64,000 bases of DNA from Scyliorhinus canicula (Eukaryota). The position numbers were made by a program, and so were the translations under genes. Location: NCBI RefSeq assembly GCF_902713615.1, contig NC_052148.1, forward strand, positions 134,404,569 through 134,468,568, read 5' to 3'. Below, piece after piece: positions 5,622-57,600 of this stretch; position 1 is the stretch's first letter, and every line of letters begins with the position of its first letter. The notes beneath the pieces were generated by a model, which was not told the DNA's origin, did no database searches, and saw nothing but the letters and a program-made list of their open reading frames with translations.

Positions 5622-7490
5622 GTTTTTTTATAAACATTTTATTAAATAATTTATGGTTTATAACAATAAATACAAATGTAAACATAGTTCAGTGCGTAAC
5701 CCATCATTCAACCTCCCACTCTTCCCGCCTACTCTAAACACAAAATAGCCTAACTAGCCTCTCCTCTCTCTCTCTTCTCTTCTCTTCTCTTCCCCCCCCC
5801 CCCCCCCATCTCCCCTTATTGAATCTGCTGACAGTTTAGTTTTCTCCAAGGAAGTCGATAAACGGCTGCCACCTCCGGACAAACCCTAACATTGATCTTC
5901 TCAGGGCGACCTTAATTTTCTCAAGCCTAAGAAACCCAGCCATGCCACTAACCCAAACCCCTGATTTTGGGGGCTTCGAGTCTCTCCACGCTGGCAATAT
6001 CCGTCTCCGGGCTACCAAGGAGGCAAAGGCCAAAATGTCAGCGCCTCTCGGCCTCTGGACTCCCGGACCTTCCAAACATCGCCACCTCTGGACTCGGCGC
6101 CACTCTCGTTTTTAGCACCGTGGACATGACATCCGCAAATCCCTGCTAGTATCCCCCAAGCTTCGGGCATGCCCACAACAAGTGGTCATGGCTTGGGGGC
6201 CCTCCCGCTCACCTCACACACCTGTCCTCCACCCCAAAGAACGTGTCCACCCGGGCCACTGTCATGTGTGCCGTGAGCCACCTGGAATTGTATCAAGATG
6301 AGGACACGTTGTCTCTGCTCAGAGCATCCTCCCACAGACCCACCTCTACCTCTCCTCCGAACTCATGTTCCCATTTACGCTCACGCTCACCCATCTGGGT
6401 TTCCTCACACTTGATAAGTTCTTTATAGATTTCCGTACCTTCCCCTGCCCCATCCTAGAAACTAACCCTGTCCTGTATCCCCTGTGGCGGTAGGAGCGGA
6501 AAGGTCGAAACCTGCCTTCGCACAAAATTCTCTATCTGCAGATATCGGAACCCATTCCCTCCCGGCAATTCAAACTCCTCCTCCAAATCCTCCAAACATG
6601 GAAAGCTCCTATCGATAAATGGATCCCCAGCCTCTCATCCCTGCTCTCCGAAACCCCCCATCCAGCCTCACCGGGACAAACCAGTGGTTGCCACAGATTG
6701 GAGCCCACACCGACGCGCCCTCCACTCCAATCTGCTTCCGCCACTGCCCCCAAACTCTGAGCCACCACTACCACGCGGCTTGTGGAGTACCGGGCCAGCG
6801 AGAACGGCAGAGGAGCAGTTACCAATGCCCCCAAACTAGTGCCTTTACATGAGGCCGCCTCTACCCGCTCCCACAACAACCTCGCCCCCACTACCCACTC
6901 ATGGTATATTTGCCGCCCAGTAATAGTTTTTAAAGTTCGGCAGTGTCAGCCCACCTACCCCTCGACTCCGCTCTCACTTTCTATACTCGCGGGGTTTTAC
7001 CCGCCCACACAAAACCAGAGATTACCCTATTCACCCGCTTAAAAAAGGTCTTTGAGGGCAGCACAGTGGCGCAGTGGTAGCACTGCAGTCTCACGGCACT
7101 GAGATTCCAGGTTCGATCCCAGCTCTGGGTCACTGTCCGTGTGGAGATTGCACATTCTCCCCGTGTTTACATGGGTTTCGCCCCCACAACCCAAAGATTT
7201 GCAAGGTAGGTGGATTGAGCACGCTAAATTGCCCCTTAATTGGAAAAAAATAATTGGGTACTCTAAATGTTTTTAGAAAGGCCTTTGGTATAAAAATAGG
7301 GAGGCACTGGAAAACAAACAGAAATCTCGGGAAGACCGTCATTTTTATGGTCTGTGCCCTCCCCGCCAGTGACAGCAGGAGCATGTCCCACCTCCAAAAG
7401 TCCTCCCTCATTTGTTCAACTAACCGGGTCAAGTTTAATTCATGAAACTGCTGCCATCCCCGTGCCACCTGAATTCCCAAGTAAAGAAAA
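5622..7490 (-). mobile_element. L1/Tx1-like LINE 3' portion, interrupted by a V-SINE (7056-7275)
   Basis: Minus-strand ORFs include FLYLGIQV...LSLAGRAQTIKMTVFPRFLFVFQCLPIFIP and AFASLVARRRIL...WQPFIDFLGE. The poly-A-like end appears as a T-run near 5622. Confidence 0.88.
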
Positions 7491-7599
7491 CTCTCTCTCC
7501 TCCCTCCCTCTCCCTCTCCCCCTCCCTCTCCCCCTCCCTCCCTCTCCCCCTCCCCCTCCCTCCCACCTCCCCTCCCACCTCCCCTCCCACCCCCCTCCC

Positions 7600-8115
7600 C
7601 TTTATCAAATAGCTGTAGTGGGTGTACCTTTAAGAAATGGGTGTTTATCAAATAGCTGCAGTGATGTCAGAGTGTGGGTGGAGCTGGGTTTTGGTCTGTG
7701 GCTTTTTACTTTCGCTTTGAGCAAAAAGCTGGTGTGTGTCTGTGTTTTACTTTCATTTTCAGAGTTGGAACTGCATCCAACCAAACAAGGCTCTCTTTGT
7801 TAAAGAGGGTAATTTTCATATTGGGGTTGGTAGGAAAGATTAAGAGTCACTTATAGAGTACTGTATTTTGGGGGAGGGGGGGGGGGGAAAGAGTATTTGA
7901 GTTGATAGTTGCTAAGATGTTTACTGTGTGTTTATAAAATGTTATCTGGATTCATAGAATAAACATTGTTTTGTTTTAAAAGTACTTTAGATCTCTGTTG
8001 CATCACACCTGTAGAGTGGACCCTTGTGCTCCCCATAACCAAAATCTATTAAAAGTTGTGGGTCAGACGAACTCCATGATACACTTTGGTGTTCTCGAAA
8101 CCTTGGCCCATAACA
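7600..8115 (+). mobile_element. Probable LTR remnant (solo LTR, 5' end obscured by a (CT)-rich tract)
   Basis: Non-coding, with AATAAA at about 7958 followed by a U5-like tract ending ...cccataaca. No TSD or 5' TG was identified. Confidence 0.5.
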
Positions 8116-8129
8116 TGAGTAAATTAGGC

Positions 8130-8590
8130 CTTTAGTCTCTGCAGTGAAGTCTATAAAAATAAGAGGCAATCTCATTTGAAACATAGAAGATTCTGAAGGG
8201 GTTTCAGAGGGTAGATGCTGAGAGATTGTTTTCACGTGCTGGGGAATCTAAAATAAGTGGGTGGGGGGGGGGGGGGGGGGGAGAAGAGAGAGAAGAGTCT
8301 CAGGATAAGGAGATGATCAGTTAGGACTGAGATGGGGAGAAATTACTTCACCCAAAGGGTTGTGAGAATCTTTGGAATTCTACAGCCCAGAGTGTTGTGA
8401 ACAGTGCCTTTCAAACAGTGCTTCAAAATTAAATACATTTAAGGCTCAGAAGGACAGATTTTTGGTCTTTCGTGTAATCAATGGATATGGGAAGCTGGCA
8501 GGAAAGTGCAGTTGAAGCCGGAGATCATATTGAATGGCGGAGCAGGCTCCAACAGGCTGTATGGTCTACTGCTGCTCCATTTCTTGTGTT
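8130..8590 (+). mobile_element. CR1 LINE 3' fragment
   Basis: RGNLI/FFTQRVV-like relics and the CR1 3' UTR gaatggcggagcaggc...ctactgctgctcc. Confidence 0.8.
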
Positions 8591-9264
8591 CAATTGACCA
8601 GTCTGCAGTTACTAGGAACAAACTTGTACCCTTTCTTGAATAAGGGCATCATGTTTGCTTCTCTTTTAGGGTCCTTTTAATCTTAATTATAGGGGATGGT
8701 GGTGGCGTAGTGGTGTCACCGGACTAGTAATGCAGAAGCCCAGGCAAATGCTCTGGTGATACGGGTTCAAATGCCACCACGCTAGTTGATGGAATTTCAA
8801 TTCAGTTAATAAATCGGCAATTAAAAAGTAGTCTCAGCAACAGTGACCATGAAACCACTGTTGATTATCAGAAAAACCCATATGGTCCATTAATGTTCTT
8901 TAGGGAAGGAAATGTGCCGTCTTTATCTGGTCTGACCTACATGTGACACCAGACCCACAGCAATGTGGTTGATTCTTAAATGCCCTCTGAAATGGCCTAG
9001 CAAGCCACACAGTTGTATCAAGCCACTACGAAGTCTACAAGCGGAAATGTAACAGTAGATCACCCAGCATTGAGCTATGCACAGGAAACAACAATGGAAA
9101 ATCAAGCCCAGTTCACCCTGCAAAATCCTCCTTGCAAACATCTGGAGATGCCAAAATTCGGGCAGCTATTCGACAGATTGGTACTGCAGCAGCGTGACAG
9201 TCATACTCATAAAACCATACCTTACAGATAATGTCCCAGACACCGCCATCATTATCCCTGGATA

Positions 9265-9751
9265 GGGCAGCATGGTGGTGCAGTGGGTTAGCACTGCGGC
9301 CTCACAGCGCCGAGATCCCAGGTTCGATCCTGGCTCTGTCTCACTGTCCGTGTGGAGTTTGCACGTTCTCCGCATGTTTGCATGGGTTTTGCCCCTGCAA
9401 CCCAAAAACTTTTATTTATTTTTTTATAAATTTAGAGTACCCAATTCATTTTTTTTTTTTCAATTAAGGGGCAATTTAGCGTGGCCAATCCACCTAGTCT
9501 GCACATCTTTGGGTTGTGGGGGCGAAACCCACACAAACACGGGGAGAATGTGCAAACTCCACACGGACAGTGACCCAGAGCCAGGATCAAACCTGGGATC
9601 TTGGTGCCGTGAGGCATCAGGGCTAACCCACTATGTCACAGTGCTGCCCCCACAACCCAAAGATGTACATGCTAGGTGGATTGGCCATGCTAAATTGCCC
9701 CTTAATTGGAAAAAATGAATTGGATACTCTAAATTTTAAAATATAATAATA
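9265..9751 (+). mobile_element. Short-tailed V-SINE containing an inverted copy of the same family (about 9410-9649, minus)
   Basis: Outer TSD attatccctggata (9251-9264 and 9752-9765). The host SINE resumes at a duplicated caacccaaa. Confidence 0.92.
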
Positions 9752-11164
9752 ATTATCCCTGGATATGTCCTGTCCCATAAACAGAATAGACCCACAAGTG
9801 GTGGCAACACAGTGGCACACGCTCGGGAGTAAGTTTCCCCGCGGATTTTCAACATCAACTCTGGACCCCATGAAATCTCATTGCATCAGGTCAAACATGA
9901 GCAAGGAAAGCCCATGCTGATTACTACCTATTGGTCCCACCTCAGCTGATGCATCCATGCTCCTCCATGTTAAACATCACTGGAGGAAGCACTAAGTGTG
10001 GTTGGGTACAGAATGTACTCTGGGTGAGGGGCTTCAACGTCCATCACAAAGACTGGCTCAGAGGCACCACAACTGACCGAGTTGGTTAAGTCCTAAAGGA
10101 CCTAGCTGCCAGACTGGGTCTGCAGCAGCTAGCAAGGGAACCAACAAGAGGGAAATACCTACTTGACCTAATCCTTGCCAACCTATTTTTCGCAGATGTA
10201 TCTGACCATGACGGTATTGGTAGGGATGTGACCAATGCACAGTCCTTGTGGAGCTAAAGTTTCGTCTTCACATTGAGTGTTGTGTGGCACTGCTACTATG
10301 TTAATTGGGATAGATTACCAACAGATCTAGCTACTCAAAACTCGGCCCACAGCACACCTCGATGCCATCAGAGGCAGCAAATGTGTACTCAACTGCCATA
10401 CAGGATCCATCCTGGTTCAAACAAAGTCCAGGTGCAGCATCAGACAGATCTAATGATCTAGATATGAATCTAGAAAAATAAACCTGTTAAAGCTACAACA
10501 CAGGACTAGCTACAAGCCAAACAGCAGCAGTGGCATGCAATAGACAGAGAGGTAAGCAATCTCACAACCAACAGTCAGATCCAAGCTGTCCTGCCACATC
10601 CAGTCGTGAATTAAACAACTCACTAAAGGAGTAGTCTCCAGGGAGAGGCCCAGCATATCAATGCAAAAGAGCAGGCTGAAGCTTTTGCAACCATCTTCAG
10701 CCAGAAGTGCTGAATGGATGGTCCATCTTTGCCTTCTCCTGGGTCCCCAGCATCAAAGATGCCAGCCTTCAGCTAATGCAATTCACTCCACGTGATATCA
10801 AGAAATGACTGATGGCACTGGGGACTGCAGAGGCTATGAGCCCTGACAACATTTCAGCAATAGCACTGAGGACTTGTGCAGTGCCCTTAGCCAAACTGTT
10901 CCAGTACAATTACAGCATTGGCATGGCAGTGCAGGCATGTCCTGTACACATAAAGCTAAACAAATCCAGCCTGGCCAAATACACCTGACATGTCTACTCT
11001 TGATCATCAGCAAAATGAGGGAAGAAATCATCGGCAGTGCTATCAAGCAGCACTTTCAACAATAATCTGTTCACTGGTGCTCAATTTAGAATCCGCCAGT
11101 GTCACACTGTTCCTGACTTCATTACAGGCTTGGTTCAAGCATGAAAAAAAAGCTGAAGTCCAGA

Positions 11165-11418
11165 GGTACGATAGCACAGTGCACTGTTGCTTCACAGTGC
11201 CAGATACCTTGGGTCACATTCTGTGCGGAGTCTGCACATTCTCCCTGTATCTGCATGGGTTTCCTCCCATAAGTTCCGAAAGACATGCTTTTTAGGTGAA
11301 TTGGACATTCTGAAATCTCCCTCAGTGTACCCGAACAGGCAGCGTAGTGTAGCGACTAGGGAATTTTCACATTGCAGTGTTAATGTAAGCCTACTTGTGA
11401 CACTAATAAAGATTATTA
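11165..11418 (+). mobile_element. V-SINE with (ATT)n-type tail (type C)
   Basis: V-core followed by tail ccgaacaggc...gactaggg...gcctacttgtgacactaataaagattatt. Confidence 0.8.
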
Positions 11419-12090
11419 AGAAGGCCTCAGTTTGGACCCCGATACGGGGCAACCACCGGTTTTCACCAGGGACAATAGATAGTGGGTTTTTGAGTTGGCA
11501 TAGGACAGGCATCAGGCGGATGGGGGACCTTTTCCTCGACGGGAAGTTTGCGACCTTAGAGAAGTTGGAGGGGAAGTGGGGTCTCCCCCGGGAATACTTT
11601 CAGGTATATGCAGATTAGGGCATTTGTTAAGCGGCAGGTGGCGGAGTTTCCACTATTGCCGCCAAGGGGGGTGCAGGATAGGGTGCTCTCGGGGACGTGG
11701 GTTGGTGAGGATAGGATCTTGGCAATTTATCAGGTGATGCAGGAGGGGGAGGAGGACTCGGTGGAGGAGCTGAAAGGGGTAGGAGGAGGAGCTAGGGGAG
11801 GAGATCGACGAGGGGACGTGGGCGGACGCCCTGGGGAGGGTGAATTCGTCCTCTTCTTGCGCACGGCTCAGCTTAATTCAGCTGAAGGTGCTGCATAGGG
11901 CACACATGACTGGGGCCAGGCTGAGCCGGTTCTTTGGGGGTGAGGACAGGTGTGGGAGGTGTTCGGGAGGCCCGGCGAATCACACCCACATGTTCTGGGC
12001 GTGTCCAGCGTTGGAGGGGTTTTGGAAGGGGGTGGCGGGGACCTTGTCCAAGGTGGTCGGTTCCAGGGTGGAACCGGGCTGGGGGCTCGC
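11419..12090 (+). mobile_element. L1/Tx1-like ORF2 fragment
   Basis: CARLSLIQLKVLHRAHMT...CGRC..GPANHTHMFWAC in ORF 11840..12394; CpG-rich. Confidence 0.88.
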
Positions 12091-12659
12091 TATCTCCAAA
12101 ATGCACTGTAGGAGCTCATCAAAGCATCTTCCAAATCTGCAAATCTACCACATGGAAGAGCAAGGGCAGGAGATGCATGGGAATAGCACCATCTGGAAGT
12201 TCCCCTCCAAGCCACGCACCATCCCAGCTTGGAACTATATCACCATTCTTTCACTAGGTAAATATCCTGGAACTTCCTCCCCAACAGCACTGTTGGTGTA
12301 CATACTCCACATGGAATGCAGCAGTTCAAGAAGTCAATACACCACCACCTTCTCAGGGGCAATTAGGAATGGGCAACAAAAATTGCTGACCTAGCTGGTG
12401 ACACCAATGTCCCTTAAAGAATGTAAAATATAAAAACTGCCATTGTTTTATTCTGTTTTTCATTCATCAGTCTTATTTTCATCGTTACTTCCCAATTCAA
12501 CCTATTGCACTTGGCCTGATTCTCACTTGAAGAATTAAGATGAAAACACATTTGGATTCTCAGTTCACTCAAATTTGCTCGTACCTACTAAAAGAGAGCA
12601 TAGGGGAAAGAAAATGTTCATGCCAGCTGGCTCCTGTAGGAACTATGTGGTGTTCCTTT

Positions 12660-13105
12660 TCATGATTTGGTGGTTAGTGGTGGAGGCAGAGACCCTAAAC
12701 CCCTTTCAAAAGTACCTTGGCCTTAAGTGTTGTAAGATACGGGTCTATGGGTCAGGTGCAGGACGGTGGGATTAGAAAGGGTACCGGGGGGGGGGGGGGG
12801 GGGGGGGGCATGATGGCACAGTGGTTAGCACTGGTACTACAGCACTGAGGACCCGGGTTCAAAACCAGGCCCTGGTCACCGTCCGTATGGAGTTTGCATA
12901 TTCTCCCCGTGTCTACATGGGTTTCACCCCCACAACCCAAAGATGTACTGATTAGGTGGATTGGCCACACTAAATTGCCCCTTAATTGGAAAAAAAAATA
13001 ATTGGGTACTCTAAATTTATTTTAAAAAAGATAGGGCACCTGGGTGTCCTCCGGCTGGCATGAAGATGGGCAGAATGGCCTCCTACTGTGCTGTAACTTT
13101 TCTAT
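12660..13105 (+). mobile_element. CR1 3' end with nested short-tailed V-SINE (about 12805-13028, preceded by a G-run)
   Basis: Tail gaatggcctcctactgtgctgtaacttttctatgg; SINE A/B boxes and V-core. Confidence 0.75.
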
Positions 13106-16446: not shown

Positions 16447-16806
16447 TTTGATTCGTTCAAGGGACATGGGCTTCGCTGGTTGGGCCAGCATTTATTGCCC
16501 ATCCCTAATTGCCTTTGAGGGGGCAGTTAAGGGTCAACCACATTGCTGTGGGTCTGGAGTCACACTTAGGTCAGACAAGGTATGGTTGGCAGATTTCCTT
16601 CCCGAAAGGACATTAGCGAACCAGGTGGATTTTTATGACAATCGACAATGGTTTCATGGTCATAATTAGACTTTTAATTCCAGATTTTCAGCTAATTCAA
16701 ATATCACCATCTGCAGTGGCGGGATTTGAAAGTTGGTCCCCAGAGCATTACCCTGGGTTTCTGATTTACTATTTCAGTGACATTACCACTATGCCACCGC
16801 CTCGCC
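16447..16806 (-). mobile_element. Short non-autonomous element: 5' head of the Zenon-like LINE joined directly to its 3' tail
   Basis: The reverse complement aligns by eye with 8692-8985, then continues into ctcaaaggcaattagggatgggcaataaatgctggccc, the tail seen at 12350, 35490 and 46420. Confidence 0.88.
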
Positions 16807-19042
16807 TTTTCTTTTAAAGAATGAATTATCTGAACACAAAGTGATCAGCTTTTTAAAATATTCGACCCATCAGATTCCAGTCGGTAGAATGGCAGATTTA
16901 ATCAAATTCTTATTAAACATTCTATATGCCAAGTATTCTGATTATGAAGTTTGAGACCCTTGAATGTTGATTATTTACTCAGAGTGGGTGAAAACCCTCG
17001 TTCACATTGTTAAACATAGCACAATATTTTTAAAATTTCTACAATCTACACCAGGTGACAAAACTTGCCTATGGTACTCAAGTTAAAATGGCAAAAAAAA
17101 TTGTGATGAGCCAATTGGCTTTCGGATTGCCAAAAAGGCATAGACTGTAACTGGCACTTTGGGAATACCGGTCTGAGTTTTCCCACAGGCTTCAGACCTC
17201 CGAAATCAGGACTAAATAGGGGCCCACGGCCACACTTGCCAGCAGTGAGGAGTCAGTCTCCAGTTGGCCACCTCCTCAATTGCTGTCCAGTGGGCTCCTG
17301 ACAATGCATACCCTGAGGTCAGTCCCATTGGGTGAGATGGGGACAACTAAAACAGGGCGCAGGTCTTGAGAACACATCGACCTTGAGGCACCTCGCTAGC
17401 CTGCACAGAACACAGTCAATGAAGACACCTGAAGCCAGTAGGGAAATTATGATGGAGGGGAAACACATCATAGGATCGGACCGGCCACAATTGCATCCTT
17501 TCATTCACGCTGCCCAGTTATTGGAGCATGGTGCCTCAAGCTCCAACATCCTCAAGACCTGTACATGGAGAAAGCCTGCAAACGAACTTGCAGTTCCGGC
17601 ACATTGGTGCTGCTCCAAAAGTGAGTTCCAGTGGTGTTGCAAGGTTAACCACCTTAATACTTTATATAGAAGCAAAATACTGCAGATGCTGGAAATTTGA
17701 AATAAAAACAAAAACCATAATTAGCTGCCTGCCTCAGTGGAGGGGACAGCGAATTAAGTTATCAGCATGATCCTTATCAATTGTGGTGGCAATCTAAGGA
17801 CTTGCCTTCCCAACAGTTTTCCCTATTTTCCAGGCCTTACACCCCTCATCTTAGGGAATATCCACAGATATTTCTATCATGGTGGTTAAATTTCACACTG
17901 GTGATAAAGTAATAATTTTTCAAAACATATTATGCTTGTATAACAAGCATATTTTTAAAAACTCAACTTGAAAACCTTACTTCACTACTGATGCAGAATT
18001 TGCTTTTGCTCGCTACAAATTAATGCAAGAATATAAATTTCTTGACTAGTCAACTCAACAGTTTACATAACTGTTGAGTTATGTAAAAATGCATTCAGTA
18101 CTCAACTTTGCTTATGTCAGACTGTACGTTTTAAGGCTGCTAAATATATTTTCTTAAATGAAAAGGTTTCATCAACTCAACATGGTAGCAGCTGTCCATG
18201 TGTGGAACAACTGAGAGGTGCTCTAATCAGTTAGAAATATAGGCTGCACACTTGCCATGACAAAATGCTTATGTGCGCCTCACTAATGTGCAGATATAAT
18301 GTACTTCTATTACACAATTTGCAAATGTATACCATCATGGTTAACCTCAAAATATGCAACAATATTTTCTAACCAAAAACAACTAGTATTGAGGATTACA
18401 TTTTCTACCAGAGGGTAAGACAATGAGAAATAATTTAAAATTAGGAAGTTAGAGAAAACAAGGAATCTTAAATCTTTATACCTCTTTTGATTTACACTCC
18501 AACAACCAGGGCATGAGGTCAATCAGTATTACCAGGCAGAAAATTACTTCTCAAATTCAAAATTTACAAGCACTTCTTCACCTCCTGATTGTGGATTATT
18601 CCTGTCTAGTCACCAAATACCATACACAAGGCCTTGAAAATGCAGAATACATGGTACAACATTTGCACACGTAATATCTAACGATTTTTAAGATATATAC
18701 ACACAACTCCCTCCAACAAAAGCAGACCGAACTTCCATCTTTAAGATCATGACCACTTTTCTTTAATGCATTTGTAGTTTTCCATTTCAAAAATGTCAAA
18801 TTTCTGTCAAAATGGTTTACATGTTGACATTGCAGCATGCCATAAAATTGTTTGCCATTGAGATAAAGGGCAGTAACAATGTGAATATGGATCAAAACAG
18901 AAGCATGCTTAAAGAACTTGCTGAAACAAAATTTTGCGACTTCGCTAACAAAGAAAAAGATGAAATATACTCAGGTATAGAAAAATAAAATGACGAGCAT
19001 CCGCATACAGTCATGTCTTTCCTGACCTCGTTATGTCCAAAA

Positions 19043-32729: not shown

Positions 32730-35700
32730 AGGACAAAACTAAAGGCTCTGCATCTAAACGCACCAAGCATTCGAAACAAAACAGATGAACTGAGAGCACA
32801 AATTTAATTTAATAAATACAAATCGGATAGCCATTATAGAAACATGGCTACAGAATGACTGAACTGAATATTGATGCGTATGTGACATTTCGGAAGGACA
32901 AGAAGTGAAAAGGTGGAGGAATATCTGTTAATTAATTATGTTTTAGCACATTAGAGAGAGATGATCTAAGTTAGGACAGAGTATAAAAGAAACAATGGAT
33001 GCTGGTCAGAAAGGTACAGCAATAATCATGGGGGATTTTAATCTACATATAGATTGGAAGATAACAGGTGGACAATGGCAACATGGGTGAGGAACTCAAA
33101 TGTTTTAAAGATAGTTCCTTACAACAGCATGTTCTGAAACCAATCACAGGGCAGGCAATACTAGATCTGGTATTGTGCAATAAGATAGGATTAATTGACA
33201 ACCTCAGTGAAGGCATTCTTAGATAGCAGCGATCATAATATGGCTGAATTTTACATTCAGTTTGAGGGAGAGAAGAGTGCGTCCAGGATAAGAGAATGAA
33301 TGTGGAGCTAGCTAAAGTGAACTGGCAAATGTGCTTCAGGGAAAGATCAATAGAGGTTCAGTGGCAGACATTCAAAGGGATATTTCAGAATACACCGAAT
33401 AGGCACATTCCAATGAGAGAAAAATTCCAAGGGGAAGACTCATCATCCATGGCTAACTAAAAAGTTAAAGATAGTATTAAATTTAAAACAAACACACATA
33501 TTTGCACAAAGTCAGAAGATTGGAAAGAATATAAATAACAGCAAAGAATGATCAAAAGATTGCTACGGTGGTAAAAATTAAAAGTACAAGGGAAAGCTAG
33601 CTAAAATGAATAATAAAAGTTTCTACAGATATTTAAATAATGGGTGACATGTGGTGCAGTGGTTAACACTGCAGCCTACAGTGCTGAGGACTCGGGTTCA
33701 AATCCCGGCCCTGGGTCACTCTCCCTGTGGAGTTTGCACATTCTCCCCATGTCTGCGTGGGTTTCACCCCCACAACCCAAAGATGTGTAGGTTAGGTGGA
33801 TTGGCGATACTAAATTGCCCCTTAATTGGAAAAAAATAATTGGGTACTCTAAATTTAAATATATATATATTTACATAAGGGTTAAAGTGAGCATTGGTCC
33901 TACAGAAAGTACATCTGGGGAATTGATAATGAAAAGTAGGGTGATGGTAGATGAATTAAAATAGGTATTTTGTATCAGCCTTCACTGTACAGGACACAAG
34001 TAACATCCCAGAAATAGCTGTAAATCAGGAAATGGAAGGGAGAGAGGAACTCAAGAAAATTATCACCACGGAAGTGGTATGGAGAAAATTGTTGGCTCTG
34101 CGGGCTGACAGGTCCCCTGGTCCGGATGAAATTCACCTTAAAGTCTTGAAAGAAGGGCTAATGATATTTTTGACGCATTGATTTTAATTTTCAAAAATTC
34201 TCTAGATTCAGGGAAAGTACCATTAGATTGGAAGAGAGCAAATGTAACCACTTTATTCAAAAAGGGAGGGACACAGAAAGCAAGAATCTATCGGCCAGTT
34301 AACCTAATATCTGTCATCAGGAAAATGTTAGAGGCCATTATTAAAAATGTGATAGCAGAGCACTTGGAAAAATGCACGGCAATCAGGCACTGTCAACATG
34401 GTTTTGCTAAAGTGAAACTGTGTTTTAACAAATTTATCGGAGTTCTTTGAAAAAGTCACATGTGTTGCGGATAAAGAGAAACTGGCGGGTGTACTGTACT
34501 TAGATTGTCAAAGGCATTTGGTAAAGTGCCCCATCTAAGGTTATTGCAGAAAATAAAAGCTCATGATATGAGAGGTAACATATTGGCATGGATAGAAGAT
34601 TGGCTGGCTAACAGGAAAACAGTTGCCATAAGTGGGTCCTTTTGGTTGACAGGTTGCGACGAGTGCCACAGGGATCGGTGCTGGAACCTCATTTTTTCAA
34701 TTTATATAAATGACTTGGATGAAGGGACTGAAGGTACGGTAGCTACATTTGCCGATGACACGAAGATAGGTCGGAAGTTCAATTGTGAAGAGGATGCAAT
34801 GAAGCTACAAAAGAGACATGGATAGGTTAACTGACTGCGCAAAGATCTGGCAAATTAACTATGATGTGGCCAAATGTGAAATTCTCCATTTTGGCAGGAA
34901 GAATAAAAAAGATTATCTGTATGGTGAGAGATTGAAGAGCTCTCAGATGCAGAATGATCTGGGTGCCCTTGTGCATGAATCACAAAAGGTTAGCATGCAG
35001 GTACAGCAAGTAATTTACCTCCTGATTCCTCAAAGCCTTTCCACCACTACAAGTCAGGAGTGTGATGGAGTACTTCCCACTTGCCTGGATGAGTGCAGCT
35101 CCAATAACACAAGAAGCTTTACAACATTCAGGATAAAGCAGCCTGCTTGATTGACACCCCTTCCACAAATATTCACTCCCTCCACCACCGACGCACATTA
35201 GCAGCAGCGTGTACCGTCTACACGGTGCACTGCAGGAACTCACCAAGGCTCCTCAGGTAGCACCTTTCCAAACCCACGATCACTACTACCACCTAGAAAG
35301 ATAACGGCAGCAGATACATAGAAATACCACCACCTGGAAGTTTCCCTCCAAGTCGCTCACCATCCCAACTTGGAAATATATAGCCGTCGCTTCACTGTCG
35401 CTGGATCTAAATCCTGGAACTCCCTTCCTCAGTAGGTGTACCTGCACCACATGGACTGCAGCGGTTCAAGAAGGCAGCTCACCACCACCTTCTCAAGGGT
35501 AATTAGGGATGGGCAACAAATGCTGGCCCAGCCAGCAAAACCACACCCCACAAAATTGAATTTTTAAAAAAGTAATTTGGAAAGCTAGAGTGTTATCGTT
35601 TATTGGGAAGGGAATTGATTACAAGAGTATGGAGGTTACACTTCAGTTATTGGTGAGACCACATCTGGAGTACTGTGCACAGCATGGTCTCTTTATTTAA

Positions 35701-55624: not shown

Positions 55625-57175
55625 CAGTCGAGGGGAGAGTTGTCCAGAGAGTCTTCAACATTGATACCAAGCCCATGAGGTTTCATAGCATCTAGTCAAA
55701 CATGGACATGGAAACCTCCTGCTGATTGACATCTATTGCCACTCCTTTTCTGATGGATCTGTACTCCTTCATCTTGAACACTGATCGGAAGTAGTACAGA
55801 GGATGGCAAAGGCACAGAATAACTATGAGTGGGAAACTTCAAAGTCCATCGCCAAGAGTGGTTCTGTAGCAACACCACTAGCTGAGCTGGCCATGTGCTA
55901 ACGGTCATAGCTGATAGGTTTCATCTGGAGGTGATAAGGGAGTCAAAGAGGGGATCCAAGAAGGAGGAAATGCCTACTTGACCTCATCCTCACCAATCTA
56001 TCCGTCACTGATCCATCTGTCCATGATAGTATAAATAGGATGGGATAAACTTCAAAAAGATCTAGCTACTCAAAGCTGGGCACTCATGAGGTGGGGCCGG
56101 CCATCAGCAACAGCAGAATTGTATTCAACTACATTCTGCAACCTCATGGTGCTTAATATCAGCAGGGAGGTAAACCCTGGTTTAATGAAGAGTACAGGCA
56201 GGCATTCCAGGAGCAGCACCAGGCACAGCTAAAAATTAGGTGTCAACCTGGTGAAGCTACAACACAGAATTACACGTATGCCAAATAACGTGAACAGTAT
56301 GTATAGGCAGACAAGAGATAAACAAACTCCACAACCAACTCTGCAGTCCTACCACAACCAGTCATGAGTGGTGCTGGACAATTAAACAACTAACTGGAAG
56401 AGGCTCCACAAATATCCCCATCCTCAATGATGGTAGATCCCAACACATCATACATAAGGCAAGGCTGAAGCATTTTCAACCATCTTCAGCCAGAAGTGCC
56501 GAGCGGATGATCCAATGAGCCTTCTTGAGGTCACCAACATCACAAGACGCCAGACTTCAGCCAATTAGATTCACTCCACATGACATCATCAAGAAATGGC
56601 TGAAGACACTGGACACTGCGCTAGCTATGAACCCTGACAACATTCTGACAATCATACTGAAGATTTGTGCTCCAGAACTTGCTGCGCATGTATCCAAGCT
56701 GTTCCAATACAGCTACAACACTGGCATCTATCCAGCAATGTGGAAAAATGGGCAGGTATATCCTGTCCATAAATATCTAGTCAATTACTGCCCCATAGCA
56801 AAGTGAGCGAAGGGGTCATTGACGGCGCTGTCAAATCGCACTCACTGAGCAATAACCTGCTCATTTTGAGTTCCGCCAGGGTCACTGAGCTTTCGACCTC
56901 ATTACAGCCTTTGACCAAACATGGACAAAATAGCTGAACTCCAGAGGTGAGGTGAGAGTGACCATCAAGGCAGCATATGACTTAATGTGGCATCAAGAAA
57001 CCCAAGCAAACCTAGAGTAAATAGAAACTTCAGGTACTGAAGTAGTCAGTGTCCATTTACAACAAGATCTGGAAAACATTCTGGTTTGGATGGAAAGGTG
57101 GCAAGTAATAGTCACACCACTCAAGTGCCAAGCAATGACCATCTCCAACATGAGAGAATCCAACCATTATTCCTT
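55625..57175 (+). mobile_element. Zenon-like LINE APE/RT fragment
   Basis: ORF 56525..56806 LQPIRFTPHDI.KKWLKTLDTA.AMNPDNI...CAPELAA..SKLFQYSYNTGIYPAMWK; colinear with about 9820-11165. Confidence 0.82.
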
Positions 57176-57600
57176 ATTCTACTCATTGGAATTTTAAAAA
57201 GAGTGAGAAGTGATCTCATTGAAACATATAGGATTCTTTAGGGGCTTGACAGGGTTAATACTGAGAGGATGTTTCCCCTCATGGAGGAGTCTAGGACCAG
57301 AGGGCATAGTCTCAGAATAAAGGGGCGCCAATTTAAGACGGAGATGAGGAGGAATTTCCTCTCTCAGAGGGTGGTGTGTCTTTGGAACTCCTTGCCTCAG
57401 AAAGCTGTGGGGGCAGGGGCTGAGAGTATATTAAGGCTGAGACAGATTTTTGATTAGCAAAGGAATCAGGGTTACTGGGAGAAGGCAGGAAAGTGGATGT
57501 GGGGAATGTCAGATCAACCATCATCCTATTGAATGGCGGAGCAGGTTCGAGGGGCCAAATGGCCTACTCCTGGTCATATTTCTTATAGTCTTATGGTCTG
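57175..57600 (+). mobile_element. CR1 3' fragment
   Basis: SRTRGHSLRIKG..FKTEMRRNFLSQRVV.LWNSLP and the 3' UTR. Confidence 0.9.

Follow-up and report, generated by a model that had tools for sequence, protein, structure and literature searches.

A decayed Scyliorhinus canicula LINE that probably carries a SINE-type head and core as its 5' untranslated region

Can a long interspersed element (LINE) that encodes its own enzymes begin with the transfer RNA (tRNA)-related head of a short interspersed element (SINE)? The question is raised by an element at 8692-12425 (plus strand) of a 64,000-nucleotide stretch of Scyliorhinus canicula DNA (NC_052148.1, 134,404,569 to 134,468,568), referred to here as the window. 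The element is a composite of a SINE-type head and body, a linker, endonuclease and reverse transcriptase (RT) relics, a LINE 3' end and foreign insertions. It is likely an old, decayed insertion of a CR1-group LINE that has one open reading frame (ORF) and whose 5' untranslated region (UTR) consists of the SINE head and core. This LINE would, with fair assurance, be the partner of the tRNA-headed, conserved-core SINE of this genome, and we favor the view that one mobile lineage exists in two length classes, the short SINE and the long LINE, which have both ends in common. The SINE-type head on a single-ORF LINE is thus probably a trait of the family. Short and long elements that have both ends in common are known; a CR1-group LINE bearing a tRNA-related head is new as far as we have found, and a literature search returned no account of any LINE headed by a tRNA-type sequence. 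The source of the conserved middle parts of SINEs is an open question, and a CR1-group LINE with a tRNA-related head and core would provide a LINE/SINE pair in which both the direction of exchange (capture or deletion) and the polymerase that launches the element can be tested. To this the locus contributes a decayed instance and indications, from contigs, that the join recurs in two species.

Head, core and single-ORF LINE are colinear in one unit. The segment 8692-9014, comprising the head (8692-8790) and the SINE body (8791-9014), has homologues in two further SINE copies of the window, at 16801-16514 and 19627-19398. The first of these belongs to a complete SINE (16801-16450, minus strand) with head, body and tail, in which the body runs straight into the tail, and the second is a shortened member of the same family (minus strand). 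A SINE is short (<600 bp), non-coding and passes directly from its body into a LINE-derived tail, whereas the body at 8692-12425 runs into a linker of ~60-80 bp past 9014 in place of the SINE tail and then into endonuclease and RT relics, with the tail lying ~3.3 kb beyond the body; the element is therefore not a SINE copy. Direct reading of the sequence upheld the earlier statement, made from the letters alone (the sequence-only reading), that no SINE tail, poly-A or duplication intervenes between the head segment, which ends at 9014, and the coding relics. An alignment with MAFFT had suggested 8990-9030 as a shortened SINE tail; this was ruled out, as contigs show ...tggcctagcaagccactcagtt to be SINE body, with the tail after it.

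The linker (9015-9093), which constitutes the remainder of the 5' UTR, is LINE-specific and multicopy by contig depth, and no second copy of it occurs within the window. It leads up to candidate start codons at 9077 and 9094, 385-402 nucleotides (nt) from the first base of the element, close to the ~430 bp at which the sequence-only reading had placed the endonuclease. From 9094 to 9264, translations reveal relics of the endonuclease N-terminus, NI.R..PK.GQL...LTDNVPDTAIIIPG (also given as ...LTDNVPDTAIIIPGY), with at least two frameshifts, and central and C-terminal endonuclease relics follow at 9752-10254. Weak matches to the endonuclease profile are colinear and in profile order (9200-9262, 9740-9829, 9833-9946, 9901-10086 and 10090-10254), and tblastn matched 10006-10185 to P0042 with an E value of 3e-11, which falls to 1.5e-13 when the query is restricted to the endonuclease part. 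A further linker and the N-terminal third of the RT occupy 10255-11167, where 10642-11154 matched P0001 and P0002 (tblastn, E 1e-28 and 3e-23). The RT relics claimed earlier are thus real, although only the first third of the enzyme is left at the locus. Pfam did not recognize these short, decayed coding pieces. A second, related LINE copy in the window (55630-56950, or as far as 57240 at its widest), 5'-truncated inside the endonuclease, is 68-74% identical in DNA to the locus over 55672-56948; its RT N-terminus (56519-56803) is better preserved than that of the locus and served as a search query. Past this copy, 57242-57454 encodes a repeat motif that is very common in sharks (...RMFPL...TRGH.L.I.G..F.TE.RRNF..QRVV.LWNSLPQ...).

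The relics of endonuclease and RT share one strand and keep their order, which corresponds to the single-polyprotein layout of CR1-group LINEs, the RT core being absent from this copy. The sequence-only reading took the lack of room for ORF1 to be unusual, on the premise that CR1-group LINEs usually possess one. This premise fails for the host group: according to a 2026 survey of the CR1 group (PMC13343379), ORF1 is always absent in Zenon and Rex1 and is also absent in chondrichthyan L2s. The missing room for ORF1 is therefore ordinary for a chondrichthyan CR1-group LINE.

The LINE 3' end (12095-12425) is 75% identical to another LINE 3' end at 35286-35532 and to the SINE tail at 16519-16451, with its final part, 12340-12425, aligning with both. 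The tail, ggcaattagg.atgggcaa...cccttaaagaatgtaaaa, ends without poly-A, as expected of a CR1-group 3' tail. The 3' tail of the sequence-only reading is present, and it is the same as that of the SINE.

Within the head, the A box at 8703-8713 (tggcgtagtgg) fits TRGCNNAGTGG exactly, and the B box at 8764-8774 (ggttcaaatgc) departs from GGTTCRANNCC only at 8773, where C is found in 58% of the family contig depth, restoring the box. Both boxes thus lie where they had been reported. Their spacing had been called tRNA-like; the gap between them is, however, 50 nt, which exceeds that of a standard tRNA. Run with its default settings, ARAGORN did not call the head (8692-8790); nor did the tRNA model of Rfam match it, or the second head copy (16690-16820), at E<=10. 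With relaxed thresholds, applied to a 113-nt head carrying nine majority-letter substitutions, ARAGORN folds the head into an 89-nt cloverleaf whose long extra arm accounts for the 50-nt gap. Designating the head as tRNA-like or tRNA-related is, on the strength of the boxes and this weak fold, reasonable, if weakly supported.

Inside the SINE part lies a hugely repeated core (8864-9019, its share of the body being ~8864-9014), with a contig depth of 3e5 to 1e6 in three DNA runs; summed over contigs, the depth of the SINE body attains 5e5, compared with 4-9 in the single-copy flank. This core (…ggaaggaaatctgcc…ccagacccacagcaatgtggttga…) is putatively Deu-type and SacSINE1-like; a literature search with a 15-mer of the core matched only an unrelated primer. 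Most SINE copies depart from the locus after 9014 or 9008, into the tail (TCAGTT)CAAGGGCAATTAGGGATGGGCAA (also written CAAGGGCAATTAGGG...). The two SINEs of the window had been regarded as independent joinings of head and tail; contig depth instead makes them members of a very abundant family, and in each of them a different block of the family-majority sequence is missing. The copy at 16801-16450 is without tggcctagcaagccactcagttcaag, and that at 19627-19398 without a ggcaattaggg...aaatgc block. Since the motifs aaatggcctagcaagcc of the body and aaatgctggcctagccagc of the tail are alike, deletion between these internal repeats is a simple explanation for both missing blocks.

Whether the join between core and LINE recurs was addressed with contigs from two DNA runs of one organism (A), one DNA run of a second (B) and one RNA run, all aligned to 8500-9264 at 80% likeness. 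In the three DNA runs, where the single-copy flank has a depth of 4.7, 4.2 and 8.7, the bin 9020-9045 reaches 448, 183 and 1244, against 26, 9 and 57 in the next bin; since this next bin is far shallower, most contigs over 9020-9045 must reach leftwards into the core. At position 9022, 77, 41 and 100 contigs concur on a letter unlike that of the locus copy. The LINE-specific segment 9072-9149 has a depth of 110-650, and 9202-9253, with a depth of 6,000-13,000, is common to many LINE copies. (The bin 9150-9175 has a depth of 0-0.8 in every DNA run, even in the locus's own contig, with neighbors in the hundreds, which is probably due to software filtering and not a real gap.) Listed contig pieces extend from the core to 9033, 9040 and 9041. 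Joints to the endonuclease start include one from 9019 to 9200 (shorter side 62 and 42 letters, in A and B) and one from 9040 to 9216 (37 letters, in B). In one organism-B contig, 8977 is joined to 9086 via 34 letters that align to 9005-9032 (22/29); this alignment scores 19, where shuffled letters average 12 and reach at most 23. Judged from depth and contig pieces, the join probably exists at other loci as well, since a minority, multicopy continuation past 9014 is found in two organisms, and other, diverged copies in two species probably carry the same order of core, LINE-type linker and endonuclease start. A search of a representative protein library yielded only RT fragments and one long near match, P0009, which is the model of a host sushi-domain gene that has exonised a piece of LINE. 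A scan of metagenome contigs, a collection unlikely to contain shark DNA, gave 0 matches to the junction pattern.

Several points weigh against a SINE-headed LINE family. None of the listed contig pieces bridges 9014 with 31 letters on both sides, and in several joints a side is shorter than 30 letters or the middle is unknown. Each genome holds ~1e5 SINE cores and ~1e3 endonuclease starts, numbers at which a few chance neighbors are to be expected. The segment 9015-9045 may be part of a longer SINE subfamily instead of the LINE. The recurrence evidence consists of contig depth and pieces. Protein word-index searches with the N-terminal endonuclease frame, with an antisense ORF (8926-9141) that bridges the junction and with the sense frame 9016-9228 produced no candidates, a blank that is uninformative. 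The flanks of 8692 and 12425 are without a convincing target-site duplication, and the tentative assignment to the CR1 group follows from the tail and the literature.

The closest known systems share parts of this arrangement. Like the ORF1-less CR1-group LINEs (Zenon, Rex1 and chondrichthyan L2; PMC13343379), the element has a short 5' UTR ahead of one ORF that encodes both endonuclease and RT. It differs from them in its tRNA/SINE head, as the survey mentions 5' repeat arrays but contains 0 occurrences of the word "tRNA", and in ending without poly-A, whereas Zenon has a poly-A tail. Bipartite pairs such as ingi/RIME, L1Tc/NARTc, RTE- and Vingi-derived SINEs and the R2 SIDEs (PMC5786205) resemble the present pair in that the short element equals the 5' part of the long one plus its 3' tail, just as the SINE at 16801-16450 equals the 5' part of the locus plus the locus tail. 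In those pairs, however, the tRNA head sits on the SINE, whereas here the CR1-group LINE itself starts with the head and a conserved core. A Repbase screen by Kojima (2018, PMC5786205) identified RTE and Vingi as the only clades whose LINE 5' parts occur in SINE bodies, with the small-RNA head on the SINE, and the paper remarks that the conserved SINE bodies had no known counterpart among LINEs. SacSINE1 of sharks and chimaera combines a tRNA head, a Deu domain and a tail in common with L2-2_CM (Luchetti et al. 2017, PMC5499810); in Ohshima (2013, PMC3747384) its partner is CR1-4_DR-like, and the V-SINE pair is HE1/HER1. The Deu-SINEs SacSINE1 and LmeSINE1 (PMC5499810, PMC3747384) have in common with the SINE of this locus an A/B-box tRNA-related head, a conserved core, a CR1-group LINE tail and their presence in cartilaginous fishes, but in those papers the sharing is confined to the 3' tail. 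Identity of our SINE with SacSINE1 is presumed from its putatively Deu-type core.

A LINE may once have acquired a SINE 5' module through a template switch by the RT or through recombination; or else such a LINE may have given rise to the SINE by losing its interior. The lineage would then have spread by ordinary target-primed reverse transcription via the common tail, with head and core serving as an internal promoter region that is portable. In the short SINE it would be an RNA polymerase III (Pol III) promoter, whereas for a long coding RNA, initiation by RNA polymerase II (Pol II) in or near the head-core region is deemed likelier than initiation by Pol III. After insertion, the present copy decayed through frameshifts, stops and the nested SINE pair, and lost its RT core to unrelated insertions. 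The sequence-only reading spoke of a LINE family with a captured SINE-like promoter; the colinear unit and the join recurring in two organisms agree with such a family, but not specifically with capture, as the sequences appear to fit capture by the LINE and birth of the SINE by internal deletion equally well. The specific proposal that a CR1-group LINE lineage of cartilaginous fishes inherits the Pol III head and SINE core as its own 5' UTR, with the SINE as its internal-deletion derivative, is speculative and, on balance, rather unlikely. If it were true, the "enigmatic" conserved SINE body would be a LINE 5' UTR, in a clade for which this has not been reported earlier, and an internal promoter of Pol III type might launch the LINE as a protein-coding element.

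Could the LINE then be transcribed by Pol III, from its A and B boxes, as a full-length, uncapped coding RNA with a sense strand free of T runs? Both boxes are intact in the family majority, and no run of four or more T (T4+) occurs in the first 573 nt (8692-9264), up to the nested insertion. The six T4+ runs of the two LINE copies are all private, so that 0 are common over 1.2 kb of alignment versus ~2.6 expected from composition (P ~0.07); this absence of ancestral T4+ runs is suggestive at most. At 10683 and 56473, for example, TTTT was made separately in each copy from an ancestral TTT. Contrary to this form of the idea, the 2,323 nt of the element proper (without insertions) carry 3 sense T4+ runs versus 4.7 expected from composition (P 0.30) and 13 A4+ runs versus 14.6 expected, the low T4+ count being due to a sense strand that is A-rich and T-poor; the depletion of T runs that had been put forward as a check is thus not significant at this locus. 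The RNA run, which is oligo-dT-based and was confronted here with old copies, has reads from both strands over the SINE core but none on the LINE-specific 9046-9200. To our knowledge, translated Pol III transcripts of >3 kb are without precedent, and a literature search found them in no paper. Transcription of a long LINE RNA by Pol III, as the sequence-only reading had contemplated, is unsupported, and we regard its strong form as improbable.

A purely local accident, in which a SINE lay beside the LINE and later lost its tail, or in which one template switch created a single chimeric insertion, is very unlikely. Chimeric retrocopies that arise by template switching, of the U6/L1 type, are well known (cited in PMC5499810), and the window contains neither a second LINE 5' end nor a clear target-site duplication of the element. 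A 13-bp candidate duplication, aatcttaattata / aatgtaaaatata, is unconvincing, as its second copy overlaps the tail's own end. The U6/L1 and small RNA/L1 chimeras do resemble the locus, with a Pol III-type 5' part fused to a LINE without a tail between, but they are single events with a variably 5'-truncated LINE. Here the LINE part begins upstream of the ORF, so that the join lies just ahead of the ORF start and not at a random truncation point, and the order recurs in two organisms: the continuation past the core is multicopy in all three DNA runs, and several contigs connect core and endonuclease start.

Recurrence itself could have another source, if the LINE enzyme often switched from the 5' end of LINE RNA to an abundant SINE RNA, producing independent chimeras without a propagating master. 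SINE RNA is abundant, and its tail is common with the LINE, so that both RNAs meet one enzyme. The lengths between core and endonuclease also vary among contigs (8977 to 9086, 9013 to 9077, 9019 to 9200 and 9040 to 9216), although these differences may be later deletions. Such switches would be expected at the SINE 3' end or at variable points, whereas the SINE part always ends near 9003-9040, upstream of its tail, and in no case is a truncation of the LINE part into the ORF visible. We therefore give this alternative little credence; even as a mere recurrent accident, the join would still document free recombination of SINE and LINE modules. Insertion of a LINE into a pre-existing SINE is ruled out by the absence of any SINE remainder past 12425.

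The copy at 8692-12425 is dead: it carries frameshifts, stops and a nested SINE pair, is internally disrupted, and ~1/3 of it is foreign. The nested insertion at 9265-9751 consists of a different, very abundant SINE (V-type core gtggagtttgca...) in plus orientation with a minus-oriented second copy at ~9407-9650, for which BLAST found 85 matches within the window. It is flanked by a clean 14-bp duplication, attatccctggata, at 9251-9264 and 9752-9765, and the tRNA match given by both ARAGORN and Rfam at 9269-9342 falls within it. This inverted SINE pair also constitutes a long hairpin, to which Rfam assigns plant-type microRNA precursors at scores far under gathering (MIR7723, 66.7 bits vs 200). 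Two further insertions occupy the place of the ~1.5-2 kb RT core of the host LINE, a replacement for which deletion combined with insertions, or repair, are candidate routes. The first, 11168-11420, is a fragment of that same V-type SINE family with 25 BLAST matches within the window. The second, 11421-12094 (or from 11420), is GC-rich, derives from the 3' part of an L1/Tx1-like LINE and shares its strand with the host LINE; it encodes the zinc-binding C-terminal end of the RT (CGRC...H....C), with a Pfam match to zf-RVT (PF13966) at E 0.0025, under the curated cut-off, and weak copies of it occur at 6302-6116 and 136-209. Outside the element, two runs of ~24 G flank the locus, at 8258-8283 and 12775-12800, the second lying directly before the head of a V-type SINE (12800 onwards).

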